NCBI GenBank assembly: GCA_002269645.1
Contig: NIVC01001573.1
Span: 124,001-188,000, forward strand
From: Macrostomum lignano
Lineage: Eukaryota
DNA: 64,000 nucleotides
Direction: 5' to 3'
Shown here: piece after piece, positions 819 to 40,504 of the stretch
Position numbering within the stretch: the first letter of the stretch is position 1
How the letters are laid out: every line of letters starts with the position of its first letter
The notes under the pieces: generated by a model
What the model saw: only the letters and a program-made list of their open reading frames with translations
Databases searched by the model: none
What the model was told of the DNA's origin: nothing
Position numbers and translations under genes: made by a program

Positions 819-1711
819 GAGATGAGGGACAGAAGCTGAGATGAGGGACAGAGCCTGAGATGAGGGACAGAAGCTGAGATGAGGGACAGAAGCTGAGATG
901 AGGGACAGAAGCTGAGATGAGGGGCAGAGCCTGAGATGAAGGACAGAAGCTGAGATGAGGGACAGAGCCTGAGATGAAGGACAGAAGCTGAGATGAGGGA
1001 CAGAGCCTGAGATGAAGGACAGAAGCTGAGATGAGGGACAGAGCCAGAGATAAGGGACAGAAGCTGAGATGAGGGGCAGAGCCTGAGATGAAGGACAGAA
1101 GCTGAGATGAGGGACAGAAGCTGAGATGAGGGACAGAAGCTGAGATGAGGGGCAGAGCCTGAGATGAAGGACAGAAGCTGAGATGAGGGACAGAGCCTGA
1201 GATGAAGGACAGAAGCTGAGATGAGGGACAGAAGCTGAGATGAGGGACAGAAGCTGAGATGAGGGACAGAAGCTGAGATGAAGGACAGAAGCTGAGATGA
1301 GGGGCAGAGCCTGAGATGAAGGACAGAAGCTGAGATCAGGGACAGAGCCTGAGATGAAGGACAGAAGCTGAGATGAGGGACAGAGCCTGAGATGAAGGAC
1401 AGAAGCTGAGATGAGGGACAGAAGCTGAGATGAGGGACAGAAGCTGAGATGAGGGACAGAAGCTGAGATGAAGGACAGAAGCTGAGATGAGGGGCAGAGC
1501 CTGAGATGAAGGACAGAAGCTGAGATCAGGGACAGAGCCTGAGATGAAGGACAGAAGCTGAGATGAGGGACAGAGCCAGAGATAAGGGACAGAAGCTGAG
1601 ATGAGGGGCAGAGCCTGAGATGAAGGACAGAAGCTGAGATGAGGGACAGAAGCTGAGATGAGGGACAGAAGCTGAGATGAAGAACAGAAGCTGAGATGAA
1701 GGAAAGAGATG
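819..1711. repeat. 19-bp minisatellite (GCTGAGATGAGGGACAGAA and variants)
   Basis: Unit seen directly in tandem, with variants GAGCCTGAGATGAAGG and GAGATCAGGG. Confidence 0.95.
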
Positions 1712-1736
1712 AGATGTCTAGAGTTCCTGAACTCAG

Positions 1737-1978
1737 ACTAGCAAAGTTTTAAGACTGTGGAATCTGCAGCCGCTTCCCAATGTAGCGGAGATTAAGGATT
1801 TGATGGAGATCGAGGGGCAGCTGGCCTGTGCTGAAGAGTTTTTGGTTGAACCGCTTTCTAGACAGACAGACAGACAGGCAGACAGGAGGAATGGACCCAG
1901 GATCGGGGCTGAAGATCTTGCAGAACTGATGACTCATGTTGGTTCCCCCGCCGAACATGCCACTTCCATACCAGGCTG
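1737..1978 (+). CDS. Candidate upstream exon of the Ala/Gln-rich gene (TSKVLRLWNLQPLPNVAEIKDLMEIEG...)
   Basis: Acceptor aactcag|ACT and donor TG|gtcagt. Open frame; the phase-2 end matches the exon starting at 2812. No family recognised. Confidence 0.3.
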
Positions 1979-2989: not shown

Positions 2990-3025
<36 letters not shown>

Positions 3026-3541: not shown

Positions 3542-3667
3542 CCGCTGGGTGCTGCCACGGCCGGCCCAGAAAACCCAAAGTTCATTTTGCAGATGGCATA
3601 AGGCTGCTGGGGCAGCCTTCATCGGGTTCAGCTGACTTTTTAACTGACTCGTGTGTACTTTTGTATT

Positions 3668-4404
3668 GATCCTTCAGCGGGTGCCGCTATCCTCCCTGAT
3701 CCTTCAGCGGGTGCCGCTACCCTCCCTGATCCTTCAGCGGGTGCCGCTACCCTCTCTGATCCTTCAGCGGCTGCCGCTACCCTCCCTGATCCTTCAGCGG
3801 GTGCCGCTACCCTCCCTGATCCTTCAGCGGGTGCCGCTACCCTCTCTGATCCTTCAGCGGCTGCCGCTACCCTCCCTGATCCTTCAGCGGCTGCCGCTAC
3901 ACTCCCTGATTCTTCAGCGGGTGCCGCTACCCTCCCTGATCCTTCAGCGGGTGCCGCTACCCTCCCTGATCCTTCAGCGGGTGCCGCTATCCTCTCTGAT
4001 CCTTCAGCGGCTGCCGCTACCCTCCCTGATCCTTCAGCGGCTGCCGCTACACTCCCTGATTCTTCAGCGGGTGCCGCTATCCTCCCTGATCCTTCAGCGG
4101 GTGCCGCTACCCTCTCTGATCCTTCAGCGGGTGCCGCTAACCCTCTCTGATCCTTCAGCGGGTGCCGCTACCCTCCCTGATCCTTCAGCGGGTGCCGCTA
4201 CCCTCTCTGATCCTTCAGCGGCTGCCGCTACCCTCCCTGATCCTTCAGCGGGTGCCGCTACCCTCCCTGATCCTTCAGCGGGTGCCGCTACCCTCCCTGA
4301 TCCTTCAGCGGGTGCCGCTATCCTCCCTGATTCTTCAGCGGGTGCCGCTACCCTCCCTGATCCTTCAGCGGCTGCCGCTACCCTCTCTGATCCTTCAGCG
4401 GGTA
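3668..4404. repeat. 30-bp minisatellite (GATCCTTCAGCGGGTGCCGCTACCCTCCCT), about 24 copies, downstream of the stop codon
   Basis: Direct; each unit has a small AGCGG-GTG-CCGCT stem. Confidence 0.95.
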
Positions 4405-4883
4405 CCGCGTACGCATGTAATTATAGAAAATCGTCTTAAAATTAAACTCGGAGATACGATACTACTAACCACAGTAGTCCAGTTTGCATCTGTTTGTGTA
4501 GATAAAATAAAAAATGTAGTTCAATTATGACCAGCACTCAATTGTTCGGATCATGCTAGACAAGAATTACTACTAAGCACACAGTAGTGTGAATCCCTAA
4601 TGCTCGTTATCTGCTAAATTATTTATGAACAAAATTTTACTTTTGTATTTAATGTAACTTTTATTCTCGAAATTGCCATTTTCGCTGATCGAACACGCGT
4701 CTTGCTGCTAACTACAGCTGCTCACAAGTAGCATGCGCAAATTTTTTCTCATTTTTAGACCCGCGTAGGATGGACAGTTTTTTAATTTATAATAAATTGA
4801 TGGCTGCTTTATACAGAAACTTGTCAGCCCGCTCGTTTCTTTATGTATTGAAATTGAAACTGAAAACTCCTACTGAATATGGA

Positions 4884-5755
4884 ATCTGTCTCTCCGCTCC
4901 CTGATCAGTCCCTGAGTCTGTCTCTCCGCTCCCTGATCAGTCCCTGAGTCTGTCTCTCCGCTCCCTGATCAGTCCCTGAGTCTGTCTCTCCGCTCCCTGA
5001 TCAGTCCCTGAGTCTGTCTCTCCGCTCCCTGATCAGTCCCTGAGTCTGTCTCTCCGCTCCCTGATCAGTCCCTGAGTCTGCCTCTCAGCTCCCTGATCGG
5101 TCCCTGAATCGGCCTCTCCGCTCCTCGATCAGTCCCTGAGTCTGCCTCTCAGCTCCCTGAGTCTGTCTCTCCGCTCCCTGATCGGTCCCTGAGTCTGTCT
5201 CTCCGTTCCCTGATCAGTCCCTGAGTCTGCCTCTCAGCTCCCTGAGTCTGTCTCTCCGCTCCCTGATCGGTCCCTGAGTCTGTTTCTCAGCTCCCTGAGT
5301 CTGTCTCTCCGCTCCCTGATCAGTCCCTGAGTCTGCCTCTCAGCTCCCTGAGTCTGTCTCTCGCTCCCTGATCGGTCCCTGAAGCTGCGGCTCCGCTCCC
5401 TGATCAGTCCCTGAAGCTGCCTCTCCGTTCCCTGATCAGTCCCTGAGTCTGCCTCTCAGCTCCCTGAGTCTGTCTCTCCGCTCCCTGATCGGTCCCTGAG
5501 TCTGTTTCTCAGCTCCCTGAGTCTGTCTCTCCGCTCCCTGATCAGTCCCTGAGTCTGCCTCTCAGCTCCCTGAGTCTGTCTCTCGCTCCCTGATCGGTCC
5601 CTGAAGCTGCGGCTCCGCTCCCTGATCAGTCCCTGAAGCTGCCTCTCCGCTTCCCTGATCAGTCCCTGAAGCTGCCTCTCCGCTTTCCTGATCGGTCCCT
5701 GAAGCTGCCTCTCCGCTTCCCTGATCAGTCCCTGAATCTGCAGTTCCGCTCCCTT
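4884..5755. repeat. 32-bp minisatellite (GAGTCTGTCTCTCCGCTCCCTGATCAGTCCCT) with shortened variants
   Basis: Period 32 measured between 4889, 4921 and 4953. Confidence 0.95.
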
Positions 5756-6305
5756 AGGCTCCCGCCTTAGTTAAAAGAAGCGAGCTGATGGAAAGCTATT
5801 GAACACAATTATGCAATAATCAAGGTCACAAGGGTACAGTTTATTTTAACAAAAAATCAAAGTACCCGAGAACGCGCGCCGGTGCTTAGCAGATCAGCTT
5901 CCAAACAGTTGGAATCAAGGAACTTTCAAGTAATTATTAACAATTAATTAACATCAGGTTTTTAAAACACAGGATTTGAGACAAGAATGAACAGAGAATT
6001 ATTATTAATCAAACAGAATGAGTCAAGAATTTAAAACCGACACAGCATCATGTTTTTACATTGGATGAAGCAAAAGTTAGGAAATGAACTCTGTTGATTT
6101 CTGGGCTATTGTTGTTATATTGGAAAATTAATATAAAAATATAAAAAAACAGGTTAGCAACGACAGGTAACATCAGGAAGTAAATTTAATAGCGGCCAGC
6201 AACTGGAAAATTTACACAGAAATTCTCTGGGAAAAGTTCAAATAAACTTATCAGAAAATTGCAGACAAACAGATTGGACAAGTTGAGATTAGAGGGCGTT
6301 TGTTG

Positions 6306-6965
6306 CAGAGATTGGAAGGCGATTCTTGAAGAGATTGGAGGGTGATTCTTGAGGAGATTGGAGGGTGATTCTTGCAGAGATTGGAGGGTGATTCTTGAGG
6401 AGATTGGAGGGCGATTCCTGCAGAGATTGGAGGGTGATTCTTGAGGAGATTGGAGGGTGATTCTTGCAGAGATTGGAGGGCGATTCCTGCAGAGATTGGA
6501 GGGTGATTCTTGCAGAGATTGGAGGGCGATTCCTGCAGAGATGGGAGGGTGATTCTTGCAGAGATTGGAGGGTGATTCTTGCAGAGATTGGAGGGTGATT
6601 CTTGAGGAGATTGGAGGGTGATTCTTGCAGAGATTGGAGGGTGATTCTTGAGGAGATTGGAGGGCGATTCCTGCAGAGATTGGAGGGTGATTCTTGCAGA
6701 GATTGGAGGGCGATTCCTGCAGAGATGGGAGGGCGATTCCTGCAGAGATTGGAGGGCGATTCCTGCAGAGATTGAAGGGCGATTCCTGCAGAGATTGGAG
6801 GGCGATTCCTGCAGAGATTGGAGGGCGATTCCTGCAGAGATTGGAGGGCGATTCCTGCAGAGATTTGGAGGGCGATTCCTGCAGAGATTGGAGGGCGATT
6901 CCTGCAGAGATTTGAGGGCAATTCTTGCAGAGATTTGGAGGGCGATTCTTTTAGAGATTGGAGGG
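6306..6965. repeat. 23-bp minisatellite (GAGATTGGAGGGCGATTCCTGCA)
   Basis: Direct; generates ORFs 6289..7110 and 6648..6983. Confidence 0.95.
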
Positions 6966-7161
6966 CTATTTTTGCGGAGATAAATTGCGCTGTTTCAAAG
7001 ACAGGTGACTCTGAAGTCGTTAAACAGTAAAAACTACCCAATGCAAAAAGACAGCAAACTGTGGATTCAAATTTGTGACACCCCAGAACACACGAACTTG
7101 ACTTGTACAAGCAGAAACTAATAAAAGTACAAAAATCGGTCTCAGAAGTCTCATTCTACAA

Positions 7162-10100
7162 TCATTTCCCGCCCGGGGCTCGAATCGGCAGTCCCTGAAT
7201 GGCGTCCCTGTACGCCTGCGGCGGCCGCGTCTTTGGCCGGTCGCCCGGGTGCGCCTCGGTGAAATGCGTGTCCAGAACTTCGCGCGACCAGTAGGAGCGC
7301 CGGCACAGGTGGCAGTGGTGCGGGAACACGCCCAGGTGGTACTGCACAATGTGATCCTTCAGGCTGTTCAAGCTGCTGGAGGAGCTGGTGCACACCGAGC
7401 AGTGGTAGGTCACCCCGCCGAAGTTGCCACGCTTGCGCACCACCCAGCACTTGGCCAGAGGCGCCGGGTCCACCGCCCGGTCCAGCGAGTCCGGCATCAG
7501 CAGCAGCTCCTTGCCGTTCACCATCACGCTGGCTGGCTGGGCGGCCGCTGTCTCGGCGCCTTCCTCTTCATCGTCCTGCTCCTCATCGTCTTCCTGGGCT
7601 TCGGTCTCAGCCTCCTCCTCTTCCTCATCCTCCCCTTCCTCATCGCCAGCCTCTTCCTCCGCTTCGCCGTCTTCGCCGTCTTCCTCAGCGCCGTCGTCCT
7701 CGATAATCTGCATCTCGGCATCGTCAGCATAGTCTTCCTCATCAGCCTCCTCCTCGTTCCCTTCTTCATCGTCTCCAGCCTCCCCAGCCTCCTCATCATT
7801 GACGCCGTTATCAGCTCCGTCCTCGTAATCTTCCTCTTCATCATCTTGTTCCTGGTCTTCTTCTTCCGACATCGATCGGGGCCGCTTCCTGCTGCCGGAA
7901 GAAGAATTGCCAGAGGCCGAGGCAGCTGCGGAGGCGGCGGCGGCGGCAGCGGCAGCGGCGGCTTCTCGACGAGTCTTGGCGGCCGCGATGGCGGCGGCGG
8001 AGCGCTGCAGAATCCGCTTGGCCTGACTGGACGGCTTGACGTCCACGCGGTTCATGGCGTAGCGATAGGCCGAGTACTGCAGCAGGTGGAACTCGCGCTG
8101 CGGGTGCTCCAGCAGGTGGTGCCGGAACACGTGGTTCCTGACCGCGTACAGCTTGCCACACACGCTGCACTTGTGCCCGGGAATGCGCAGGTGGTCGCGC
8201 ACGATGTGGCCCCGGACTGGGCCAACATTGTGGGAGCCGAACTCGCACCAGCTGCAGGTGAACTGGCACCTGCCCGGCGGCAGCGGCTTCTCCGACTCGT
8301 CAGCCTGGATGACGAAACAGGTTGTGGGGATCTGCGGCCGGTCGGACGAGCACTGCATCTCTGGCGGGACGCCCGCGCTGGACGATGTCGAATCCTCCGC
8401 GTCCTCGCCTGGCTCGTCGGCTGAGGCCACGGAGGTCACGAGTTCCTGGTCGGAGCCGGCGCCCGTGGTTTTGATTTTTATTCGAAGACCTTTATTGGGC
8501 GAGGCGGCGATGCTGCCGGTGGCCGAGGCAGGCGACACCGAGGCTGCGGGGGTGCCGCTCTGGAACGGAGATTTAAGGTGGATGATTAGGGTGGATTCTC
8601 GGGTAGATTTAGGGTGGATTCTCGGGTAGATTTAGGGTGGATTCTCGGGTAGATTTAGGGTGGATTCTCAGGTACATTTCCAGGTACTCGTAGATTTATG
8701 GTAGATTCTCGGGTATACTCTCAGGTAGATTTAGGGTCGATTCTTGGGTAGATTTAGGGTAGATTCTCAGATAGATTTAGGGTAGATTCTCAGATAGATT
8801 TAGGGTAGATTCTCAGCTAGATTTAGGGTAGATTCTCAGCTAGATTTAGGGTATATTTTCAGCTAGATTTAGGGTAGATTCTCAGATAGATTTAGGGTAG
8901 ATTTTCAGCTAGATTTAGGGTAGATTCTCAGATAGATTTAGGGTAGATTCTCAGCTAGATTTAGGGTATATTCTCAGCTAGATTTAGGGTATATTCTCAG
9001 ATAGATTTAGGGTCGATTCTCAGATAGATTTAGGGTCGATCCTCAGATAGATTTAGGGTATATTCTCAGCTAGATTTAGGGTATATTCTCAGATAGATTT
9101 AGGGTAGATTCTCAAGTAGATTTAGGGTGGATTCTCAGCTAGATTTAGGGTAGATTCTCAGATAGATTTAGGGTAGATTCTCAGCTTGATTTAGGGTAGA
9201 TTCTCAGATAGATTTAGGGTATATTCTCAGCTAGATTTAGGGTATATTCTCAGCTAGATTTAGGGTAGATTCTCAGATAGATTTAGGGTATATTCTCAGC
9301 TAGATTTAGGGTAGATTCTCAGATAGATTTAGGGTATATTCTCAGCTAGATTTAGGGTAGATTCTCAGCTAGATTTATGGTAGATTCTCAGATAGATTTA
9401 GGGTATATTCTCAGCTAGATTTAGGGTAGATTCTCAGCTAGATTTAGGGTAGATTCTCAGCTAGATTTAGGGTAGATTCTCAGATAGATTTAGGGTAGAT
9501 TCTCAGCTTGATTTAGGGTAGATTCTCAGATAGATTTAGGGTATATTCTCAGCTAGATTTAGGGTATATTCTCAGCTAGATTTAGGGTAGATTCTCAGAT
9601 AGATTTAGGGTATATTCTCAGCTAGATTTAGGGTAGATTCTCAGATAGATTTAGGGTATATTCTCAGCTAGATTTAGGGTAGATTCTCAGCTAGATTTAT
9701 GGTAGATTCTCAGATAGATTTAGGGTATATTCTCAGCTAGATTTAGGGTAGATTCTCAGCTAGATTTAGGGTAGATTCTCAGATAGATTTAGGGTAGATT
9801 CTCAGCTAGATTTAGGGTAGATTCTCAGATAGATTTAGGGTACATTCTCAGCTAGATTTAGGGTCGATTCTCTGAGATTTAGGGCAGATTTTTAGGTAGA
9901 TTTAGGGTCGATTCCAAGGTAGATTTAGGGTAGATTCTCAGCTAGATTTAGGGTCGATTCCAAGGTAGATTTGAGGTTGATTTCCAGGTAAATTAAGGGT
10001 GGATTTGGGTAAGATTTTGGGTGTGATTTGGGTAGACAAGTTACTTTCATTGTAGGTTTAGGTAAGATGCAGATTTTGATGATTGAAATAAAAAATCAAC

Positions 10101-13100
10101 TCACAGAGGCGGCTCTCGCGGGTCGGAGCGGCACCATGCTGGGAAATGCGGCATCATAAGAGGCGGTGGACGCAGCGGCAGCGGCGGAAACGGCAGCTGC
10201 AGACGAAACAGCCGACAAGGCCTCGGTGGCGGCGCCGCCCCTGCCGAGTTTTTCCTCGTTCGGTCCGACCGTGCCCTTCCACTTGAGTCTGGCCAGCTGG
10301 ATGAGCAGCGGGTCGGGCAGCAGGCGGTTGTCGTCTCTGCTCAGGCGGCTGGCGTGCAGGCAGGCCGTCTTGAACCTGTCCGGCACCTTGGCGTGCACGC
10401 CCAGGATGTGCTTGCGAATGTCGCCCATGCCGTGCGGGCTGGAGGCGGAGCAGCCGGAGCAGCGGAACACCCGCTTGTTATCCGACACTGTGCGAGTCAC
10501 CGCCACCTTGTAGGTGCTGTAGTACTCCATCTTCTCACGCAGAATCTCCATGGTTTCCGAGTCGCAAGCTCCCTCAATGAGGACCTGAACACAGCGCCAA
10601 AGGCGGATGGGAAACCTTTGTTCAGATGGGTCAGTGGGTCCGATAGGGACTGGGGATAAGTCAGCGTTGGATCAGGGACTGTCGGTGGGTCAGGACAGGA
10701 TGGGTCAGTCTTAGATCAGGGACTGTCGGTGGGTCAGGACAGGATGGATCAGTCTTAGATCAGGGACTGTCGGTGGGTCAGGACAGGATGGATCAGTCTT
10801 AGATCAGGGACTGTCGGTGGGTCAGGACAGGATGGGTCAGTCTTAGATCAGGGACTGTCGGTGGGTCAGGATGGGTCAGTGTTGGATCGGAGACTTCGGT
10901 TGGTCAGGATGGGTCAGTGTTGGATCAGGGACTGTCGGTGGGTCAGGATATGTCAGTCTTGAATTAGGGGATGTCGGTGGGTCAGGATAGGTCAGTGTTG
11001 GATCAGGGACTGTCGGTGGGTCAGGATAGGTCAGTGTTGGATCAGGGAATGTCGGTGGGTCAGGATGGGTCAGTGTCGAAATTCGGCAGGAAATAATTCC
11101 CAAGACAAGTGAGCGCGCGCGATACGTCAGACTCTCACCTGCAGAGCGCTAAACGAATACGGCAGTTCGACCGCCCGCTCCAGCTCGCCTTCTTCTTCCA
11201 GAACCCGCAGGCTGGCCAGCCGCTGCTCCTGGGTGGCCACCTCATGGGGCTGGATTGGCGGCTCCGACCTGCCCAGGCCGCCGCCCAGCATGGTCGGCGT
11301 TGAAGTTGACAGGCCGCCAGCCGACGAGGCGCCGGCGGGCGACGCGGTCGGCGATGATGCGGCGGCGCGGTGCTCGGAGTCGGCAATGAGGCCCAGGGCG
11401 GCTGTTGAAGCGAATTGGTGGATGCGTGAGGCTGGGACTGGGAGGCTGACCCAGCAACTGAGGATCTGGGAGGCTGACCCAGCAACTGGGGATCTGGGAG
11501 GCTGGCCCAGCAGCTGGGGATCTGGGAGGCTGGTCTAGCAGCTGGGGATCTGGGAGGCTGGCCCAGCAGCTGGGGATCTGGGAGGCTGGCCCAGCAGCTG
11601 GGGATCTGGGAGGCTGGCCCAGCAGCTGGGGATCTGGGAGGCTGGCCCAGCAGCTGGGGATCTGGGAGGCTGGCCCAGCAGCTGGGGATCTGGGAGGCTG
11701 GCCCAGCAGCTGGGGATCTGGGAGGCTGGCCCAGCAACTGGGGATCTGGGAGGCTGGCCCAGCAGCTGGGGATCTGGGAGGCTGGCCCAGCAACTGGGGA
11801 TCTGGGAGGCTGGCCCAGCAGCTGGGGATCTGGGAGGCTGGCCCAGCAACTGGGGATCTGGGAGGCTGGCCCAGCAACTGGGGATCTGGGAGGCTGGCCC
11901 AGCAACTGGGGATCAACTGGGGAACAGCAGCAGCGCACCGGATGAGCTGGACTTGAGCAGCTTGCCGGTCTCGCCGGGCCACACCGGGTGCGAGCTGTAC
12001 AGCAGGGAGGAGAACTCCGGCTGCTGCTGCTTCTTCCCCGCATCGTCGCCGCGCTGCTGCGATTCGCCCGTCAGCATCGAGCAGGAGTCCTCGCCAGGGC
12101 CGCAGCCGCTCTCGTCCAGTCGAGAGTTCTGGTTGCTAAGCGCGCTGTCGTCAAGGGAACGAGGCGCGGAAGCAAAATTCGTGGAAGCCTTGGCCGGCCG
12201 CTCGTTGGCCAGCCGGAGCAGCATCTCGTCCGCGTACAGATGCCAGTTGTTCTCCCGCGAGATGCGGCTGGCCTGACAGCAGGTGGTCAGCATCTCGTGC
12301 GAGATTCTGGCGTGGACGCCCATCACGTGACGCCTGGCGTCGGCCAGGGTGCTGGGGCGGACGCTGTTGCCCGGCCGGCGCACCGTGTGGAAGACGCGGC
12401 CGCAGATGCACTTGTACGCCACGGTTTTTCCGCGGGCAATCTGCCTGACCAGCTGGTACTTGGAGTAGGCCCGCATCTTCGCCACCAGACTGTCCTGGTG
12501 CGGCCGGTCGCTGGCGTCCCGGAGCAGGTGGCGGAGCACCGCCTCGGAGAAGGGCAGGTTGATCACCTGGCGGGGAGGCGACGGACAGACACTCCTTAGA
12601 GTCCGTTCTGCTTATTGACATTCAGTCTGGCACTCTTAGATTCAGTCTGGCACTCTTAGATTCAGTCTGGCACTCTTAGATTTAGTCTGGCACTCTCAGA
12701 TTCAGTCTGGCACTCTCCGATTCAGTCTAGCAATCTCAGATTCAGTCTGGCACTCTCCGATTCAGTCTGACACTCTTAGATTCAGTCTGGCACTCTTAGA
12801 TTTAGTCTGGCACTCTTAGATTCAGTCTGGCACTCTCCGATTCAGTCTAGCAATCTCAGATTCAGACTGGCACTCTTAGATTCAGTCTGGCACTCTCAGA
12901 TTCAGTCTGGCACTCTTAGATTCAGTCTGGCACTCTTAGATTCAATCTGGCACTCTCAGATTTAGTCTGGCACTCTTAGATTGAGTCTAGCACTCTTAGA
13001 TTCAGACTGGCACTCTTAGATTCAGTCTGGCACTCTCCGATTCAGTCTGACACTCTTAGATTCAGTCTGGCACTCTTAGATTCAGTCTAGCACTCTTAGA

Positions 13101-14541
13101 TTCAGTCTGGCACTCTCCGATTCAGTCTAGCAATCTCAGATTCAGACTGGCACTCTTAGATTCAGTCTGGCACTCTCAGATTCAGTCTGGCACTCTTAGA
13201 TTCAGTCTGGCACTCTTAGATTTAGTCTGGCACTCTCAGATTTAGTCTGGCACTCTTAGATTGAGTCTAGCACTCTTAGATTCAGACTGGCACTCTTAGA
13301 TTCAGTCTAGCAATCTCAGATTCAGTCTGGCACTCTTAGCTTCAGTCTGGCACTCTCAGATTCAGTCTAGCACTCTTAGATTCAGTCTGGCACTCTCCGA
13401 TTCAGTCTAGCAATCTCAGATTCAGACTGGCACTCTTAGATTCAGTCTGGCACTCTCAGATTCAGTCTGGCACTCTTAGATTCAGTCTGGCGCTCTTAGA
13501 TTCAATCTGGCACTCTCAGATTTAGTCTGGCACTCTTAGATTGAGTCTAGCACTCTTAGATTCAGACTGGCACTCTTAGATTCAGTCTAGCAATCTCAGA
13601 TTCAGTCTGGCACTCTTAGCTTCAGTCTGGCACTCTCAGATTCAGTCTAGCACTCTTAGATTCAGTCTGGCACTCTCCTATTCAATATTTCAGTCTCCTA
13701 TCTAATGTCATTTTTCCGTTTGATCTGGCACTCTGATACTCAATCTATCACTATTCTATTCAATCTGTCACTCCGCACACCAGAAAATCTCGCGAGTTCA
13801 AACCTCCTCCTCGTCAACCCCGTCGGCCTCCTCAAAGTGGCTGGGGTTCTGGCCGAAGTGCAGCATGGCGCCTTTCCCAGCCGTATCGGTGAAGCCCGTC
13901 GATGAAGAAGCGGTGACAGCGGAACCCGCCGCAGGGACGCCATCCACCGAGGACGGCGTTGACGGCGGCTTCAGCTGTTGAGACAAGCTGGACGGAGGCT
14001 CCAGCACCGCGGCAGCGTCCGGGTCAAGCATCATCACATCCTCGGCGTCCTCAGACGAACCGGCGGCCCTGGGGTCGGACTGGCGAACCCGAACGAATTC
14101 CCTAGCGAGCCGGATGAGCTTGTCGTCGGAGAGCAGGGTGTACTCAGCCGGGTCCAGGCGGGACGCCTGCAGGCAGTAGCGGAAGTGCTTGGTTGAAATG
14201 CCGCAGTGGGCGCCCAGGATGTGCTTGCGAACGTCGGCCAGAGCGTGCGGCGAAGCGTAATTGCAGGAGCCGCACAGGTACTTCTTGCCGTTGCGGGCAT
14301 CCACTATCACGTACAGAGTGGAGTAGGTGGCCATCTTGGCGATGAGGTACTCCTGCAGTGCGGAGGGGAGGCTGGACTTGGGATTGCGGTGTCTCAAGAT
14401 GTGCCTGCCTGTGTGTCTGTCTGTCTTAGTGTTTGTCTGTCCATCTGTCTGTCTGTCTGGCTTAGTGTCTGTCCATCTGTCTGTCTGTCTGTCTGTCTTA
14501 GTGTTTGTCTGTCCATCTGTCTGTCTTAGTGTCTGTCTTAG

Positions 14542-14634
<93 letters not shown>

Positions 14635-14651
14635 TAGTGTTTGTCTGTCCA

Positions 14652-14702
<51 letters not shown>

Positions 14703-14735
14703 TAGTGTCTGTCTGTCCGCCTTAGTGTCTGTCCA

Positions 14736-14826
<91 letters not shown>

Positions 14827-17800
14827 TAGTGTCTGTCTGTCCATCTATCTGTCTTAGTGACTTGGCGTCTTAGTGTCTGACTGTCTACCTGTCTCTCTTT
14901 AGTCTGTCTGTCTGTCTGTTTGCCTGCCTGTCTGTTTGTCTGTCTGTCTGCCTGTCTGTCCCTCTGTCTTAGTGTCTGTCTGTCCGTCTTGGTGCCGTAC
15001 TGTCTGTCTGTTGGTGTGTCTTTAAATGCAAACCATCAAACATCCAGTAGCAGCCAATCAATCACCTGCGACTCCCTGCTGAAGTGCTGGGTCAGCTGCC
15101 TGAGCACGGCGGTGCTGTACGGCAGCGGCACCCGGTGGCGAAAGGCGTCGATGCGCACCGGCCGTGGCAGGCTGCGCTCGTTCTCGGGCTCGGATTTGCG
15201 AACCTGCGGCAAGCGGCAAATTTTAATGAGCGAGTGTACTACTGCCGCTTGGCGGATGTAGTAGTTGGCGAGGGACACGAAAAATGCAGTATACAGTGAA
15301 ACAGTGAATTTTTGGCGGGGTTGATCAGAGATTCTTGGGTAGGGTTGTTGAGTAGACTATTTGGTAGGGTTGAGTAGTCTGTTGGGTAGGATTGGGTAGA
15401 TTATTGGCTGGGGTTGGGTAGACTACTGGATAGGGTTGGGTAGACTGTTGGGTAGACTACTGGATAGGGTTGGGTAGACTGTTGGGTAGGGTTGAGTAGA
15501 CTGTTGGGTAGGGTTGAGTAGACTGCTGGGTAGGGTTGGGTAGACTATTAGGTGGGGTTGGGTAGACTATTGGGTGGGGTTGGGTAGACGAAAGGGTGGG
15601 GTTGGGTAGACTATTGGGTGGGGTTGGGTAGACTATTGGGTGGGGTTGGGTAGACTGTTGGGTAGGTTTGGGTAGACGATTGGGTGGGGTTGGGTAGACT
15701 ATTGGGTGGGGTAACAGGGTTGGGTAGACTGTTGGGTGGGGTTGGGTAGACTATTGGGTGGGGTTGGGTAGACTGTTGGGTAGGTTTGGGTAGACTATTA
15801 GGTGGGGTTGGGTAGACGATTGGGTGGGGTTGGGTAGACTGTTGGGTGGGGTTGGGTAGACTATTAGGTGGGGTTGGGTAGACTGTTGGGTAGGTTTGGG
15901 TAGACTATTGGGTGGGGTTGGGTAGACGATTGGGTGGGGTTGGGTAGACTGTTGGGTGGGGTTGGGTAGACTATTGGGTGGGATTGGGTAGGCTATTGGG
16001 TGGGGTTGGGTAGACTGTTGGGTGGGGTTGGGTAGACTATTGGGTGGGATTGGGTAGGCTATTGGGTGGGATTGGGTAGGCTATTGGGTGGGGTTGGGTA
16101 GACTGTTGGGTGGGGTTGGGTAGACTATTGGGTGGGATTGGGTAGGCTATTGGGTGGGATTGGGTAGGCTATTGGGTGGGGTTAGGTAGACCCACCAGGG
16201 TGATGGCGCCGGCTTTGTTGCTACCCGGAACCGGCTGAGTGAACTTCAGGCAATCTCGCACGGTGTCTCTCGGTATGCCCAGATGAACGCTAAGCAGATG
16301 CCGTTTAAAATCGCCCAGGCCGTAGGGAAAGGCCCGCTTGCATTCCGGGCACTCCGGGATGCGGCGCTGGTTCTCGCGGCCCAGGATTTTCACTCGATAG
16401 CCGCAGAACAGCTTCATCTTGGCGATGAGGGTCTCCGTGGCGGCCGTAGCCGGCCTGGCGGCCCTGTAGGCCTCCTCGTGGAACGGGAAGCTCACGTACT
16501 CGGTGGTTTCGCTGGACACGTCCAGACGGGGCACTTTTGTACCGTCGGCTGTTGCTGGACCGGCTGCGGCGGCATTGGCGGCGGCTGGTGACGCAGAGAT
16601 GAGGGAGGCGAGCGCTGAGCTGGGCTGCTCATCCAGTGGCCGCTTCCGAACCAGCTGCAGGAGCTGCTGCTGCTGCTGAGGCTGCGGCTGTGGCGGCGGT
16701 GGCGGCGGCGGCGGCAGCTCCTCAACGAGCGTCTTGGCCAGCATTACGCGAGAAGTGCGAATGTCTTCTTGGAGCAGAGTGGCCTGAAATAAAAGTTGAA
16801 ATTTGAAACTTTCCACTGAGAATCAGGGGAGGATTTCACTGAGGATCAGGGGTGGATTTCACTGAGGATCAGGGGAGGATTCCACTGAGGATCAGGGGTG
16901 GATTTCACTGAGGATCAGAGGCGGATTCCACTGAGGATCAGGGGTGGATTCCACTGATTATCAGGGGCGGATTCCACTGATTATCAGGGGCGGATTCCAC
17001 TGATGATCAGGGGCGGATTCCACTGATGATCAGGGGCGGATTCCACTGATTATCAGGGGCGGATTCCACTGATTATCAGGGGCGGATTCCACTGATGATC
17101 AGGGGTGGATTCCACTGATGATCAGGGGCGGATTCCACTGATGATCAGGGGCGGATTCCACTGAAGATCAGGGGCGGATTCCTAGTTATAACCCGAGTTG
17201 GCAGTGCAGCAGAGGACAATAAAATGAGTCGAAGACTCTAGCTCGAAGAAAGGGTTGCGCCACTGAATTTCCCCGCAAGCCTCGCTGCCCTGTGAAGAAT
17301 TCAACGTGTCGTTCGCGGGCACGATGACGTCACAATGAATGACGTCATTCTAATCGAAATGAAGCCCCCAGAAAGCCCAAGAGGACCGGACAATGATAGA
17401 ATGAACTCTGGCACAATTGCCCAACAACAAGCCTGCGCAACACTCGACCCTGTTCCACACAACCCCTGCCTCTCTTCCTGTCGAGTCGAGCCAAATGCAG
17501 ACGAGACCCGGTCGATGCGGACCGGACGGACAGTCAGTGCAACTCAGTACCACTCACCCACACTGACCGGCCAGTCATTCAGCGCGGTATCTTCCTCCCT
17601 CTCTCCCTCTATAGGGGAGCATTCTGTTCATCCAGACCCGGCCATCTGCGCGGTCCTTCGACAAGCAAGCAGCGGCCGCCCAAGGCCCCGGCAGTGTTCC
17701 ACGCCAGCCATGGAGCTTCATCCGTTTTGCCTGCCTTTCCCGCCAACCCCTAGCGCGGCCGGGTTCCCCCCCCCCCACCCACACCACAGGCCTTCACTGC

Positions 17801-19533
17801 AGTCAAGGCCCGGCCGCTGTCGCGCTGCAATCATCCGCTGTGCTTCCTCTCCTCTCTCTCTCTCTTTCTCTCACTGCAGACAGACTCCTGGAGAGCCTGG
17901 AGCTTCAACCGCCGGCCTGCGTCCGTCGGGACGGGGTGAGGATGGAGGAAAGAGAGACGACCGGGGGGCCCCAAGGACGAATGCAGCCCCGACAGTGAAG
18001 GGGCAGGCAGGCGGGCAGGCAGAGACGGGCAGGGCCGCTGCGTGTGGAAATGGAAGAGAGGAGAGGAGAGATGGAGGCACTGAAGGCAGGCAGGCCGGGG
18101 GACCCCGCCCGATTCAGGGCTGCCTCGGCGTTGGAGAGGCAGGCAAGCAGGCAGGCAGGCGGGGCTTTGAGGTGAAAAAGGAGGCTCTGCCCGATACAGC
18201 CAGCCAGAGCCCACAGCCGAAGCCACAGCAGGCGCGGTCGTGACGCTGACTGGGGGGGGGGGGGCCGCGGCAAGGCCAAATGAGGCAGGCCTCTGGACCT
18301 TGGCGGCTGGGCGGGGGCAGAGAAGCAGAAGAGAGACCGAGGAGGAGAAAGAGGAGCCGGGGGGCGGGTAGGAGGCGGACAGACAGGAGCTGAGCTGACT
18401 CACTCGATCTCGGCATTCAAACAGACAGCGCAGCGCAGGCAGGAGATGCAGCGAGAATGCGAATAGACAGGCGGGCACAGGAAGCAGCAGCAGGTGCAAA
18501 GACTGTTGATGCCGCAGATGCTTTTCCGCCAGCCCTCAGCTTCTATCGCTGAATCTTGCCTTTCCCATTCTGTCTGGATCGTCTCTGATTGCGCCCCGGC
18601 GACGCAGCTGCGAAATCTCGCCAAGAGAAGAAGAAAATGAATTAAGAATTTTCCAGAAATTTCTGTCATCGTGGCCGGTGCAAAAGAAACCGCGCCCCAA
18701 AAGAAATCGAAGAGGCGAGACCCGCGAGCGAGGGCCACAGGCCCGCCCGCGGCACACAGGAAGGGGAGCGGGGAGGTGGGGAAACGCACGCGCAGGGCAC
18801 AGGCTAGTGGAAAGGCCTGAACAGAGGAAATGGAAGTCAAGCCCCGTCCAGCTTAGAAGGGTGTCGCTAAAGGAGGTCATAAATGCACAACCGCCCGAGT
18901 TGAACTGAGTTGAAGCTCTGGCTTCCTTCAATGCGTCTGAGTTTCCACTCTCACGGTGGGCGCCAAATGTTGAGCTGGAGCACAACTCACGCAATGTGTA
19001 CATAGAGAGAGAGCAGCCACACACAGTTATAGCATTGCTGAAATCATTCAGCGCATTTCTACTTTCCACCTTCGCTACAAGCGTATGCCGCGCAGACAGT
19101 CACACACACGCACGCACAGACTGTCAAGCGGCTGACAATCCGGCCCAGCAGACACTGACGGGGTAAGAAAGGCAGGCAGGCGGCCAGTCCAATGCGCGAG
19201 TGCGTACACAACGCGACAGCCACGCAGCGCCCGGCCAGCAGTGACACAGCCCAGCCTGCTAGAATTTAGGTGGGGTGGCAGCAGCGGCTGGAGGACCCGC
19301 GCGAGGCCCGCCTAAGCTTCTAGTCTCTCTCCACTGCCTGTCGCCCTCTCTCACTCGGGGGTCCGCAACCTCCCCGATTCTCTCTCGCTGAGCGGCGCAG
19401 TTGCAGGCTGCAGCCAGCGGCTGGGGAGAGGAGGTCGCTGCAATCTCTCGATGCGGTCCCGGCCTCTGGGAAACAGTGTGAGAGAGGCAGAGAAGCTCTC
19501 TCTGTCAGGCAGGCCGCACGCAGCAGCGCGGGT

Positions 19534-19570
<37 letters not shown>

Positions 19571-20257
19571 GCCTCTCCTCTCCGTGGCTCGGCCCCCGGG
19601 GCAGTCCAGACCGCGGGGCTTCCGCTCCCTCGGTCCACCTCAACACAGCGGCAGGTTGCAAAATCTGGGCCAAGGCCGCTGATTGCCTCTCCGACCTCCG
19701 TCACCTCCGTCACCTCCGTCACCCCCCTCCGCCGTCTCCTCCGCCGCGGCGCTCTCTCGACCCGACCGTCGTTGGTCAGTCAGCAAGCAACTTGGTTCCG
19801 CTGTAACCTTCCGCCTACTTCAAGTTAAGCCTTGCCTAGGTAAAGCCTGAAGACACTGTTATAATCCGCATTAGGGGTCGGCTCGACTGACTTATGCCAG
19901 GTTGCCAGGTTACTAGCGGGCGGCCAGACTGCACAGATTCTATAGCTAGAGCTAGAAGGCCAAGGCAATGGGTGACTTGGACTGCGACTGACTGCTGAGC
20001 TTCATTCTCTCTCAAGCGATCGAGCGGGCAGGAGGCCCACCGCCGCCACCGCCGCTGCCGCCGTGGCACGCGCGCACACAGAGAGAATTCTCTCTGTCTC
20101 GCTCTCTCTTGAATTCCTTCCTTCTCTCTTCTCTCTGCCTGCCCGCCTGCCTCTTCGTCGGTCGCGTCAGCCAGCCAGCCAGCCAAGGCGGGCGGGCACG
20201 GCAGCTTTGAGAGTCCCCGAGGCCAAGAAGAGCCTCGAAGCGTAGCAATATAGAAAT

Positions 20258-20291
<34 letters not shown>

Positions 20292-23200
20292 GCGCAGCAC
20301 ACGCGAGCGGGCAGTCGCCGCCCCACCCCAACCGCCTCCCTTCAGCCAGCTCGATCTTCTTTCTTTCGAGGCCTTGCCTGGCCCGCCTGCCCGACAGACG
20401 AAGCCTCCCGAGGCAGCCAAGGCAGCCAGCAGTCGGGGCAAAGGCACACAAGCGCAGATAAACTCGGCGGCCCACCTCAATCAAGCTGTACACACACACA
20501 CACACTGCGCGACATGCCTCTTCAACAACAGAGTGCTGCACTGGTCGAGCAGTCAGTTAACCTGCCTGCCGCCCGCTTTAGCCAGCAGCTGCAGCAGGTC
20601 TAAAATTAAATGACCACTTAGTTACTAGTTGGTGAATTGATATGATCGAATATTGCCTGATTTTCATGCTCTATATATAGGTTAATATGCAGGTGTGTTT
20701 GAGCACTGCTTTGAGACCACTGCTGATGACAGGGCAGGGCCTCCGCTAAACTCGAGAGTCGCTCTATTCGCTCTATCGCTCTAAAATCGCTCTATTCCCC
20801 CCAGGACAGCCTTTAGAATCGCCCCACTCAGGACAGCCTTGAGAATCGCCCCACTCAGGACAGCCTTGAGAATCGCCCCACTCAGGACAGCCTTGAGAAT
20901 CGCCCCACTCAGGACAGCCTTGAGAATCGCCCCACTCAGGACAGCCTTGAGAATCGCCCCACTCAGGACAGCCTTGAGAATCGCCCCACTCAGGACAGCC
21001 TTGAGAATCGCCCCACTCAGGACAGCCTTGAGAATCGCCCCCCCCCCTAGGACAGCCTTGAGAATCGCCCTCAACAGCCTTGAATCACGCCATGACTGCC
21101 AGACACTGAGCTAATTAGCATACCGTAAGCAAATGAAAGCTCATCTCACCTCGGGACTGTCAGGATGCGCAGACGCAATGTGCTCCAGAATCAATGCAGC
21201 ATCCGTGGCCGCGGCGCCGCACTCTGAGCAGTGGCACAGTGTATAAGCAACAACGCTGGCTCCAGCCTCCCCAGCATCATCAGATTGCCTAGCGAAGCCA
21301 CTGCCACGACAGTCGGAGCAGAGATGCCGCAGGAATTTGCCCCAATCCACGGTGGCGAACTGGCAGGCCGGGCAGCGCAGGCCGAACACGGGCGGTCCGG
21401 CGGGTTTCTCCGGATCGGCGGCATCGGATTTGACAGTCAGACTGGCTGACGGCGGGTCGGCGAGAGGCGGCAGGCTCAGATAAGACACTGGCCGGGCAGC
21501 GCACGCCAGGTAGTCAATGCTGGCTATGGCCGTGGCCGGCTGGCTCGGGTGCCGCTTGGCCAGATGGCGCTGCACTGCCAGCTTGCTGGCGCTCTTCACC
21601 AGACAGCCGGGCACCTCGCAATGGTACAGCGGCCGGACGCTCTCCTCCAGGTGGGCTGGGCGAAGTAATCAGGCATGTACTTTTAGATGGAATCGGGGCT
21701 ATCGGTATAGAGAATATGATTGATTGTGCTCGACTCTTAGGCTTAAAGATTAGGGGAGATTCTCAGTGATTGAGACTAGGGGCGATTCTCAGTGCTTGAG
21801 ACTAGGGGCGATTCTCAGTGCTTGAGACTAGGGGAGATTCTCAGTGCTTGAGACTAGGGGTGATTCTCAGTGCTTGAGACTAGGGGTGATTCTCAGTGCT
21901 TGAGACTAGGGGCGATTCTCAGTGCTTGAGACTAGGGGTGATTCTCAGTGCTTGAGACTAGGGGTGATTCTCAGAGTGCTTGAGACTAGGGGTGATTCTC
22001 AGTGCTTGAGATTCTCAGGGCGATTCTCAGTGCTTGAGACTAGGGGTGATTCTCAGTGCTTGAGACTAGGGGTGATTCTCAGTGCTTGAGACTAGGGGCG
22101 ATTCTCAGTGCTTGAGACTAGGGGTGATTCTCAGAGTGCTTGAGACTAGGGGTGATTCTCAGTGCTTGAGATTCTCAGGGCGATTCTCAGTGCTTGAGAC
22201 TAGGGGTGATTCTCAGTGCTTGAGACTAGGGGTGATTCTCAGAGTGCTTGAGACTAGGGGCGATTCTCAGTGCTTGAGACTAGCGGTGATTCTCAGAGTG
22301 CTTGAGACTAGGGGTGATTCTCAGTGCTTGAGACTAGGGGAGATTCTCGGTGCTTGAGACTAGGGGCGATTCTCAGTGCTTGAGACTAGGGGTGATTCTC
22401 AGTGCTTGAGACTAGGGGTGATTCTCAGTGCTTGAGACTAGGGGTGATTCTCAGTGCTTGAGACTAGGGGTGATTCTCAGTGCTTGAGACTAGGGGTGAT
22501 TCTCAGTGCTTGAGACTAGGGGAGATTCTCAGTGCTTGAGATTGGGAACGATTCTTAATGCTTGAGATTCTCAGGGTGATTCTCAGTGCTTGAGATTAGA
22601 GGCGATATCAAAGGTAGAGAATAGGGGCGATACTCAAAGGTAGAGAATAGGGGCGATTCTCAAAGGTAGAGAATAGGGGCGATACTCAAAGGTAGAGAAT
22701 AGGGGCGATTCTCAAAGGTAGAGAATAGGGGCGATTCTCAAAGGTAGAGAATAGGGGCGATTCTCAAAGGTAGAGAATAGGGGCGATACTCAAAGGTAGA
22801 GAATAGGGGCGATTCTCAAAGGTAGAGAATAGGGGCGATTCTCAAAGGTAGAGAATAGGGGCGATTCTCAAAGGTAGAGAATAGGGGCGATTCTCAAAGG
22901 TAGAGAATAGGGGCGATTCTCAAAGGTAGAGAATAGGGGCGATTCTCAAAGGTAGAGATTAGGGGCGATTATCAAAGGTAGAGAATAGGGGCGATATCAA
23001 AGGTAGATAATAGGGGCGATACTCAAAGGTAGAGAATAGGGGCGATACTCAAAGGTAGAGAATAGGGGCGATTCTCAAAGGTAGAGAATAGGGGCGATTC
23101 TCAAAGGTAGATAATAGGGACGATTCTCAAAGGTAGAGAATAGGGGCGATTCTCAAAGGTAGAGAATAGGGGCGATTCTCAAAGGTAGAGATTAGGGGCG

Positions 23201-26200
23201 ATTATCAAAGGTAGAGAATAGGGGCGATATCAAAGGTAGATAATAGGGGCGATATTCAAAGGTAGAGAATAGGGGCGATACTCAAAGGTAGAGAATAGGG
23301 GCGATACTCAAAGGTAGAGAATAGGGGCGATTCTCAAAGGTAGAGAATAGGGGCGATTCTCAAAGGTAGAGAATAGGGGCGATTCTCAAAGGTAGAGATT
23401 AGGGGCGATTCTCAAAGGTAGAGAATAGGGGCGATTCTCAAAGGTAGAGAATAGGGGCGATACTCAAAGGTAGAGAATAGGGGCGATTCTCAAAGGTAGA
23501 GAATAGGGGCGATTCTCAAAGGTAGAGAATAGGGGCGATTCTCAAAGGTAGAGATTAGGGGCGATTATCAAAGGTAGAGAATAGGGGCGATATCAAAGGT
23601 AGATAATAGGGGCGATACTCAAAGGTAGAGAATAGGGGCGATACTCAAAGGTAGAGAATAGGGGCGATTCTCAAAGGTAGAGAATAGGGGCGATTCTCAA
23701 AGGTAGATAATAGGGACGATACTCAAAGGTAGATAATAGGGACGATTCTCAAAGGTAGATAATAGGGACGATACTCAAAGGTAGATAATAGGGACGATTC
23801 TCAAAGGTAGATAATAGGGACGATTCTCAAAGGTAGATAATAGGGGCGAACCAGTTGATTTCCAGAGCATCAGAGGCCAAGCCCAGTGCAGGCCAGTGCT
23901 GGCAAGACGAGGCTCACCTGCAAGTTGCACGGCGCTGCCGAACACCTGGCCGCAGCAGCCGCAGGCGCAGTCCTCCATCCGGCCGCTGTGCAGCCCGTGG
24001 CAATGATCGAGAAAGGCGGTCTTGTCCTCCAGATAGGCTGAGCAGTGAGGACACGGGTACAGGTCCTGGGCGGTGGCTGCGGAGAAGTGACGCAGCTGGT
24101 GCTCGCCAATGTCAGCAGCGGGAACCTGGGTGAGGCAGTAGGGACACACGGACTCGACAGCGTTGTGCTCTGCGGCTGCGTGCTTGCCCAGCTGGCTGGG
24201 GTCCCAGGATGAGTAAGCCAGGCAGAAGCCGCAGACACAGCAGGCGCTGGCAGACTCGAGTCGGTGCGCCAGCTGCTCATATTTGGCGTGCTGCGAGTCC
24301 TTGTCGAGCAGGGCGGCCCGCTGCTTGCGGAGCTTTGACACTGTCAGCTGGATGATGGGGCAAAGTCAATGATTGTAATCTTATAATTTATTTATATTAA
24401 GGGAATACTAATTATTTATATTAAGGGAATACTAATAATTTATATTAATATAAATTTACTTCTACTAATAAATAAAGTACATATATTTACAAGCATGCAT
24501 ATATGTTGCCTATTTGAGCCAACTAGCAGAATCCCCAAGTTATTCCGAAAATCAAATTATTTTACTACTAAACCCTTGTGTTTTTAATGAAAAACTATTG
24601 TTTTGACTTTTAATAGTTTAACTTTCATTTTATATGGATATTGCTACATATACAGACCTAAATTAGTCTAGTCTTTGGGTTTACTTATGTGGCAAATAGA
24701 TTTCTGGCAATATGGCTAGTTTATATTTTGGTATCCAAATATACACTAGGCAGCTATCCAAAATGCATAGTCCATATCATGCTTGGAGTTACACCAGAAG
24801 AAAACTGATGAAATTTTATCATTTATGCTTGACTTATGTCAGGCTTAAGCACTGCATGCCAGGCATAATGCTTAGACTAAGGGAGGGGGTGCAGGGCAAT
24901 TTGTACAAACATTTTTCAATTCAAAAAGTTTCATGTTTCCACTTGTATATTATAGTTAAAACTCTATAAATACTAAAGTATAAAAAAATGTAAAAGTTGT
25001 TGCATTATAGTACAATTTCTAGATTTTGAACTTTGTTTTTACTTTCTATAAATAATAAAATATAGTTAGTTCTTTGAATTCTTCATTTTATTAGGCTTAC
25101 AAAATAAGGTAATTTTTAACCAATACATGGTTAGGCCTATTATATGCCAGGCCAGAAGATAATATAGTTGTTTTTATGCTCTAGCCATTTGTGCCAATCT
25201 ACTTTTCTATCAATTCTTTTGCTAGGCATTAATACTAAGGCTAATTTTTTTCTAGATTTCTAGATGCTAGTTTTCTAGTATAATTTTAACAAAATGGACT
25301 ATGGTCCAAAATATAACCAAAGTGCCTAGAATATTTGTATATATAAATAATAACTATGCAATTTAAAATTATTTAGAATAAGTTGGATTTTGTGCTTTTG
25401 AAAAAAAATATTGACCATAATTAGGCCTAGCATAAAGAATGTTTTAGTTAATATTAGGCCTAAGTTTAAAAATCTGATCTAATATTATTTTAATCTATAA
25501 CTTTCTAAAATATAATTTTAATTGGCTTATATTATAGTTGCACTGTTAACATAGGACTTATACTTCTAAAAAGAACAAAATGTTATTGATTAAGTGATAG
25601 TTTAAGCAATATTCAACGAAGTCTAAGATTAGACTTTAGACATAGGCCTAGGAAATCATGATTATGTGCATAGGCTTTTGTGAGTTTTTTAGGTTATTAT
25701 ATTTTTACATATATAGTAGGGCCTACAATTTTTTTCAATTTAAAAGCAGAGGCATATCAATAGAGCCTAGCTATATTTTGAATTTATTTAGTTTTAAAAT
25801 ATTTTTAAATTAAAAATGCAGCTCTTTGTCATAGGCCTAGAACATATGGCATTTGTAGGCTGTATCTTTTTATCTTAAGATTTATATGGGTGTGGATCTA
25901 GAATAGGGGACATCAATCACTAAGGTAGGGCCTACATTATACACGTAATGTATTATGTATATAATATTTATAGGCTTATGCTTTTGCTTATATACTATTT
26001 ATTTTAGGGCCTACAGGCTACAACCTACAAAAATGTGCACAGGCTAGGCCTAAGCTGTAAACAGGTGCCAGATCAAGTTCAGTACAGGTACAGAAATCTA
26101 ATAATTTTATATATTTACCTCCATAAAAGACGACGACGAGTCACTTATTGTGTGGTTATCTTTAGAATTTTTGTCACCCGTACCATTCATACGACTAAAT

Positions 26201-40501: not shown

Positions 40502-40504
40502 AAG

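Follow-up and report, generated by a model that had tools for sequence, protein, structure and literature searches.

A 64-kb stretch of the Macrostomum lignano genome (hereafter the window; assembly Mlig_3_7, contig NIVC01001573.1, where record position = window position + 124000) carries, in its first 24 kb, a group of minisatellite arrays that are related to one another. Nine of these arrays, by the likeness of their units, form two linked families, A (GGGGCGATTCTC type) and B (GATCAGGG type), which are joined by the array starting at position 16811. Every array in the 7-24 kb interval is situated between minus-strand exons of a gene with multiple zinc fingers, and at least four of these arrays fill 76-94% of its predicted GT..AG introns. 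We lean, with modest confidence, towards the interpretation that the arrays are a paralogous minisatellite superfamily, which spread locally without a transposon and was then amplified in place. This is behaviour of a kind known for satellite DNA, but it has not previously been described in M. lignano. The DNA of this species that was covered comprises the window and three 21-kb loci, L001, L002 and L003.

Tandem Repeats Finder (TRF) detected ∼27 distinct minisatellites in the window, 14 of which are in 1-24 kb; minisatellites take up 36% of the window, and simple plus tandem repeats are reported to account for 15% of the M. lignano genome (PMC5730564). With head-to-tail units of 19-39 nucleotides (nt), 10-80 copies and 74-97% matches, the arrays fall within the definition of minisatellites (head-to-tail units of 10-100 nt). 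An original prediction, made from the letters of the window, had listed the motifs that these arrays have in common, and a recount placed every one of them correctly. The GATCAGGG motif is present in 35 copies on the minus strand at 3.5-5.8 kb and in 18 copies on the plus strand at 10.5-11.1 and 16.8-17.2 kb, and GATCTGGG in 16 copies at 11.4-11.9 kb. The GGGCGATTC motif occurs in 46 plus-strand copies at 6.3-7.0 and 21.7-23.9 kb and in 10 minus-strand copies at 20.8-21.1 kb, GGGTAGATTCTC in 27 copies at 8.5-10.0 kb, and GATCAGGGGCG in 5 copies within the 16811 array. Arrays are named here by their first position.

For comparison with dinucleotide-preserving shuffles, the TRF consensus units were treated as circular and both strands were considered. 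In the set of 14 arrays at 1-24 kb, an 8-mer or longer was common to 16 pairs (4.1 expected) and a 10-mer or longer to 6 pairs (0.42 expected), and neither value was reached in any of 1000 shuffles. The 12 arrays in 29-64 kb exhibited no excess of k-mer sharing (1 pair, relative to 1.65 expected). Local alignment of doubled units gave the same picture: z scores of 3 or more were obtained for 17 of 105 pairs inside 1-24 kb, for 1 of 66 inside 29-64 kb, and for none of the 180 pairs that cross between the two regions. By both measures, the sharing is real and belongs to this neighbourhood. It could still be argued that G-rich units in a G-skewed region happen to have short words in common; many units are indeed G-rich, and some 7-8-mers, e.g. 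GGGTAGA, recur widely. However, the observed sharing was never matched by shuffles that preserve dinucleotide composition, and with no cross-region pair at z = 3 we regard a chance origin as refuted, its probability being negligible. The earlier claim that the arrays are not independent slippage accidents is borne out by these counts, and the related arrays do cluster by locus. The number of related arrays, put at about a dozen, is nine (ten blocks).

The family A arrays are 6285, 8586, 20802 and the two sub-arrays 21747-22600 and 22600-23849, and the links among them are robust (z = 4-21). The largest array, at 21747..23849 (+ strand), is composed of 26-nt units; TRF assigned the unit GATTCTCAGTGCTTGAGACTAGGGGY to its first sub-array (21747A) and GATTCTCAAAGGTAGAGAATAGGGGC to its second (22600B), and the two align with z = 21. 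The array at 20802..21070 is inverted (- strand), and its 27-nt unit, which in reverse complement reads GATTCTCAAGGCTGTCCTGAGTGGGGC, aligns with z = 16.9 to 22600 and 9.5 to 21747; the 14-mer TTGAGAATCGCCCC is common to the 20802 and 21747 arrays. The array at 8586..10036 (+ strand, 23/46-nt unit TTAGGGTAGATTCTCAGCTAGAT), in whose core CG is replaced by TA, aligns with z = 8.6-8.9 to 21747/22600, and the array at 6285..6981 (+ strand, 23-nt unit GAGATTGGAGGGCGATTCTTGCA), located downstream of the last large zinc-finger exon, with z = 9.2 to 21747. In arrays 6285, 8586, 16811 and 21747-23849, no site varies more than the core CpG: CG and TG are present at ∼1:1 in 6285, C, T or A occupies the site in 21747A and 16811, and 8586 has TA. 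Outside the arrays, CpG is little depleted (observed/expected 0.89). The 21747-23849 array also contains repeated blocks of variant units, at 21966-22208 and 22941-23666: units of 28, 16, 38 and 26 nt follow one another in this order twice, 160 nt apart, and a run of GATTATC/GATATC/GATAAT units is present three times. These recurring variant blocks are internal segmental duplications, i.e. a higher-order structure.

The likeness within family A is not limited to the core. With the core taken out, what is left of the units continued to exceed shuffles in likeness (sum-of-pairs z = 2.9, P = 0.003), and the unit lengths are close (23-27 nt). A satellite or minisatellite family by descent is one in which separate arrays are alike over the whole unit relative to shuffles, and this is what was found. 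Because the likeness extends past the core, the family A arrays are diverged copies of one ∼23-27 nt unit, not unrelated arrays with a common motif. The original prediction had proposed that a motif may re-trigger amplification at each site; the likeness of the non-core parts points to whole-unit common descent rather than to core-triggered fresh amplification.

Family B comprises arrays 3667, 4885, 10654 and 11434, whose links to one another are weaker (z = 3-4.5). The array at 11434..11914 (+ strand, 28-nt unit GGGATCTGGGAGGCTGGCCCAGCAGCTG) aligns with z = 4.5 to 3667, and the array at 10654..11076 (+ strand, 39/44-nt unit containing GGATCAGGGACTG) with z = 3.4-3.6 to 3667 and 4885. The arrays at 4885..5754 (32-nt unit, reverse complement TGATCAGGGAGCGGAGAGACAGACTCAGGGAC) and 3667..4408 (30-nt unit, reverse complement GGATCAGGGAGGGTAGCGGCACCCGCTGAA; TRF and alignment) are on the - strand, the former inverted relative to 10654, 11434 and 16811, so that three arrays are inverted in all (20802, 3667 and 4885). 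The array at 16811..17182 (+ strand, 23-nt unit GATTCCACTGAGGATCAGGGGCG), which lies just upstream of a 3′ splice site at 16784/16783, carries both cores. It aligned with z = 6.3 to 4885 and with z = 3.2-3.5 to 21747/22600, as expected if the array, previously given as 16815, bridges the two groups. No significant relation to A or B was detected by alignment for the intronic 20-nt array at 12620..13676, nor for the arrays at 780-1716, 2362-2556, 14405-15011, which is (CTGT)n, and 15347-16191; array 1-353 has a single marginal link (z = 4.0 to 8586). A likeness between 15347 and 8586 that had been seen by eye was dropped (z = 1.8).

The exons of the multi-zinc-finger gene were recognised at 7162..16816 (- strand) from open reading frames (ORFs), domain matches and UniRef matches. 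Four paralogous single-finger modules sit at about 16.3, 14.2, 12.4 and 10.4 kb (ORFs 16169-16816, 13798-14652, 11913-12566 and 10096-10551). The gene also has a large exon with four fingers (7162-8559) and a small one (11139-11393), and all of these are on the - strand. For the ORF at 7162-8538 (-), the UniRef matches are two C2H2 proteins of M. lignano, A0A1I8FQ97 and A0A1I8HX04. The module at 10.4 kb is kept in the parasitic flatworms Trichobilharzia and Protopolystoma, and a profile search with the four exon modules matched two parasitic-flatworm proteins only. Farther to the right, a zinc-finger exon with C2H2-like fingers was predicted at 21150..21655 (-; candidate splice sites 3′ CCCAG|, 5′ |GTGAGA), and an upstream exon with three such fingers at 23918..24341 (-), which ends at the 5′ splice site CAG|GTGAGC. 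Measured between GT..AG boundaries, array 21747-23849 takes up 93% of the candidate intron 21656-23917, array 11434 takes up 90% of intron 11402-11938, array 10654 76% of intron 10585-11138 and array 8586 94% of intron 8560-10104. The array edges grade into decayed units that reach nearly to the splice sites, and old public gene models join the window exons across the arrays, i.e. splice them out.

Other genes in the window, a Cys-loop receptor at 48-56 kb and an ankyrin gene near 30 kb, also have arrays between their exons, but of unrelated sequence. Introns filled by arrays therefore seem to be a general feature of the window, and the common family looks specific to the zinc-finger locus.

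In modules 10.4k and 14.2k the motif LPYS..Q is followed by an additional intron; in modules 12.4k and 16.3k the reading frame runs straight through. The additional intron of 10.4k is 10585-11138, filled by array 10654, and that of 14.2k, at ∼14405-15065, is filled by the (CTGT)n run. These differences are intron gain or loss among paralogous modules.

A rival origin for the family is co-duplication, in which exon-plus-intron modules would have been duplicated in tandem and the arrays would be diverged descendants of one intronic array. The four single-finger modules are ∼2 kb apart with an array-filled intron after each, and most arrays have one orientation. However, third-codon identity between the paralogous exon modules is 0.38-0.59, relative to 0.39 at random, and a masked self-BLAST of the window detected no intron homology between modules, only 40 nt of exon. 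Synonymous sites are therefore near saturation, yet the units retain exact words of 8-14 nt in common, from which it follows that the arrays are much younger than the exon duplication. In addition, 14.2k and 10.4k are the closest modules, but arrays 12620 and 8586, which occupy the introns after them, are unrelated; three arrays have the opposite orientation, and family members are found outside the gene, at ∼67 kb. Co-duplication with the exons was rejected as highly improbable: the exon duplication is far older, the likeness of arrays does not track exon paralogy, and the three inversions do not fit.

The presence of arrays in both orientations, some of them distant, could be accounted for if the repeats were internal or terminal to a repeatedly inserted element such as a Foldback-like element, a miniature inverted-repeat transposable element (MITE) or a Helitron. 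Indeed, the 20802(-)/21747(+) pair resembles the tandem-repeat inverted ends of Foldback elements. The segment between these two inverted arrays is, however, a predicted spliced zinc-finger exon of the host gene, and no transposase-like ORF was observed nearby. The array flanks have no k-mer of 11 nt or more in common beyond CTG/A-rich simple sequence, no common termini and no match in masked self-BLAST. The array edges are decayed units, so no sharp boundary could be read for target-site duplications. We consider a transposon-borne origin unlikely. Introner-like elements do not describe the arrays either, as the intron ends outside the arrays have nothing in common and 20802, 3667 and 4885 are inverted. 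An origin of the cores from splice signals (CTGAT is branch-point-like on the transcribed strand) was also rejected: it cannot explain identities of 10-14 nt or inverted arrays.

Cores outside arrays were no commoner than expected by chance, and an nhmmer search with a family A profile matched only the known arrays in the window and in L001-L003, with no solo copies. The tiny locally mobile unit that had been suggested earlier therefore holds loosely, in the sense that array pieces may have been copied nearby, but solo copies and conserved ends are lacking. Rfam and tRNA scans of the window and a metagenome scan for two tandem cores gave no matches, and a representative-protein search with the translated 6285 array yielded nothing beyond long repeat proteins and unrelated repeat ORFs.

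Relatedness is more frequent between adjacent arrays (4 of 25) than between non-adjacent ones (12 of 300; permutation P = 0.02). The contig carries two further family A arrays at ∼66.9-67.3 kb, in the 6 kb past the right-hand edge of the window (locus L001) and 43 kb from the gene, and therefore the family moves beyond the zinc-finger gene. Their sequences are (GTGGCGATTCTCACTGGTGGTTCA)n, with z = 9.0 to 16811, and (GGGACGAATCTTAAGATTGGTGTA)n. L001 corresponds to 48.9-70.3 kb in window coordinates, and L002 and L003, reached via cluster members P0178 and P0179, are two duplicated copies of this right-hand region. In the three loci unique DNA is ∼98% identical, and the same arrays occupy the same positions, with 0-1 change per unit and copy numbers up to ∼3.5-fold different (8.5 vs 27.5, 13.6 vs 30.6 and 95 vs 62). 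The arrays are thus long-lived in place and their consensus evolution is not unusually fast. From these relationships, the radiation of A and B would be much older than the duplication of the right-hand region and much younger than that of the exons. The two neighbouring 24-nt arrays of family A are at L001 3015-3355 (∼window 66914-67254), L002 6161-7311 and L003 ∼6090-7150, and at L002 15271-15692 a 23-nt array has expanded where the window has only a short repeat. At the two 24-nt arrays the contig annotation contains a "gene" of 88-272 aa that is the in-frame translation of these arrays, (ATEPPVRI)n followed by (TPILRFVP)n, and is probably an annotation artefact.

Family A units contain an inverted repeat, and the original prediction had taken the resulting hairpin as a possible driver: a GAGAAT-AGGGGCG-ATTCTC-like motif would trigger amplification afresh, and unrelated sites would converge on the core. 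The GAGAAT/ATTCTC stem arms are present in consensus units as described there, but the only perfect stems are those of sub-array 22600-23849 and of one array beyond the window (∼66.9 kb). When three-unit strings were folded with DNA parameters, no unit folded significantly better than its shuffles (best z = -1.8; 22600B, -1.5; 21747A, +0.8). Within arrays, every arm variant lowers pairing and none is compensated; in the best array 6 of 6 pairs are retained in 23 of 47 units, GATACTC being common, and in 16811 the later units pair worse than the early ones. A hand count of 6- and 8-bp palindromes gave no general excess in the units, the number being roughly at chance.

Across the eight family A arrays, the best 3′-arm pairing sums to 35, relative to 28.1±1.9 in shuffles (P = 0.001), although these arrays have a common ancestor and the value is close to one observation; three of the eight are at chance level. 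Pairs were counted by script, as MAFFT could not align the 5′ arms, loop lengths differing. The perfect stems GAGAAT/ATTCTC (22600B) and AAGATT/AATCTT (∼66.9-kb array) differ by two compensatory pairs, and GAGATT/ATTCTT in array 6285 is a half-way state between them. Compensatory change, absent within arrays, is limited to this one comparison between arrays. The inverted repeat probably goes back to the ancestral unit, but the stem counts do not demonstrate constraint on it. The excess pairing and the compensatory changes favour motif- or hairpin-driven amplification. The non-independence of the arrays, so that the P value mostly reflects one ancestor, the whole-unit likeness, which convergence on a core would not lead one to expect, the free breakage of stems, found in half of the units of the best array, the ordinary folding energies and the absence of an unamplified solo motif in 64 kb speak against it. 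The evidence for the hairpin as a driver is weak, and we find such an origin improbable.

We return to local spread without a transposon, for which the following steps are proposed. The ancestor would have been a single ∼23-27 nt unit, roughly GAGAnT-AGGGGCG-ATTCTC plus a spacer, that split into families A and B, with 16811 as an intermediate form. Pieces of existing arrays would then have been copied nearby, mostly into neighbouring introns of the same gene and in either orientation; we infer that these introns were short and existed before the arrays arrived. For copying without a transposon the likely routes are a template switch during break repair or replication, ectopic gene conversion from one array to another, and the reinsertion of circular DNA that came from an array. 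The data show that the arrays are related, locally clustered, intronic, present in both orientations, without common flanks or solo copies, and persistent; the routes themselves are suggested by analogy with transposon-free satellite spread in Drosophila (PMC7403614) and Tribolium (PMC11610590). Each copy would have been expanded in place by slippage and unequal exchange until the intron was filled, homogenised internally, and would have drifted in sequence and unit length, most of all at the core CpG.

Several points weigh against this scenario. No insertion junction, microhomology signature or empty site was recovered at array edges, and the links within family B are modest (z = about 3-6). 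Given the inverted repeat in the unit and the two compensatory pairs that separate two of the arrays, a process that depends on structure may have contributed. Splicing of the introns is read from GT..AG sites and old gene models. Furthermore, the sample is ∼75 kb of one genome region, and a genome-wide family would turn "local" into "everywhere".

Satellites that spread without transposons have been described in Drosophila (PMC7403614) and Tribolium (PMC11610590), and the M. lignano arrays resemble the Drosophila 1.688/Rsp-like satellites and the Tribolium satellite DNAs of gene-rich regions in that related arrays are found at many nearby euchromatic sites without transposon flanks, with local expansion via unequal exchange and turnover of copy number between close relatives. 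The routes proposed are also alike, i.e. circular DNA and microhomology-guided template switching or gene conversion. The units differ in size, since those satellites have units of 100-360 nt and the M. lignano units are of 23-39 nt, in arrays that occupy nearly whole introns of one gene. CeRep25B of Caenorhabditis elegans (PMC4039745) is likewise a ∼24 nt near-palindromic unit, regionally clustered, mostly intronic and with a suspected splicing link. It belongs to a different phylum, the palindrome is perfect in only two M. lignano arrays, and the two are not alike in sequence, as AGCAGAC and GGTCTGC of CeRep25B were not found in the M. lignano arrays. The motifs of yeast megasatellites are reported to "jump" between genes (PMC2919712), propagating to new loci and then diverging, as we propose; those repeats have units of 135-300 nt and are coding, whereas the M. 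lignano arrays are short and intronic.

The parallel that had been drawn with human minisatellite cores is an analogy only. As in human Jeffreys-core minisatellites, different loci and unit lengths share a G-rich core of ∼10-14 nt and copy number varies, but the cores are unrelated, and the likeness in M. lignano spans the whole unit and is confined to one neighbourhood. The Jeffreys core GGGCAGGANG has one exact match in 64 kb, outside the arrays, and chi and PRDM9-like motifs were not found in the arrays.

To our knowledge, no account has been published of where the simple and tandem repeats of M. lignano come from. The present locus indicates that some of them, at least, form families of common descent which have spread from one intron to others close by. 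It also shows that they can make up nearly whole introns, and that they persist at least for the time needed for ∼2% divergence while copy number shifts up to ∼3.5-fold. This bears on the evolution of intron size and gene structure in a model flatworm, on assembly quality and, because one array has been annotated as a protein, on annotation quality.

The reverse-complementary arrays 20802 (-) and 21747 (+) lie in the two introns that flank exon 21150-21655. When four units from each side were co-folded as RNA, the gain was -64 kcal/mol, relative to -7±5 for shuffled units. Complementary repeats around an exon favour back-splicing or exon skipping in other animals. On the basis of the predicted pairing, exon 21150-21655 is a candidate for either, and the locus offers a concrete case of complementary intronic repeats around an exon. 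It could then be that the cores are kept alike by function in intronic RNA, as splicing-factor sites or as elements for pairing between introns. The strong predicted pairing around this exon would fit, as would CeRep25B, which is tied to genes with multiple splicing decisions (PMC4039745). On the other side, the cores vary freely at CpG, and retention would explain maintenance, not origin, so that it is compatible with local spread; we regard it as doubtful. A bolder possibility, which we also hold to be improbable, is that the repeats are self-propagating, transposon-free "colonists" of introns. Copying into nearby transcribed introns would be directed by sequence or structure (fold-back priming or a core-cutting factor), the arrays would expand into introns, and RNA pairing of opposite copies would drive back-splicing or skipping. 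If true, such repeats would be regulators of a gene as well as remodellers of its structure.

Between arrays 16811 and 20802, the 3.6 kb at 17183-20801 (58-61% G+C) are array-free and contain long ORFs on both strands with no Pfam match. This segment could be one long intron, or a promoter region that separates two zinc-finger genes. A neighbouring-intron sharing pattern is present in a second gene: the 20-nt arrays 29367-29959 and 30989-31337 flank an ankyrin-repeat exon, are identical at 15/20 positions in a hand alignment (z = 9.7), and resemble no other array. The segments at 39700-45800 are duplicated and partly inverted (77-87% identity), with a fibrinogen C-terminal domain ORF at 44859-45455, and the region has the look of a small fibrinogen-related gene cluster. 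The longest clean ORF, 58934-60319 (-), is an intact and intronless UNC93-like/MFSD11 gene, which is followed by a truncated tandem copy at 60782-61252 with 82% nucleotide identity.

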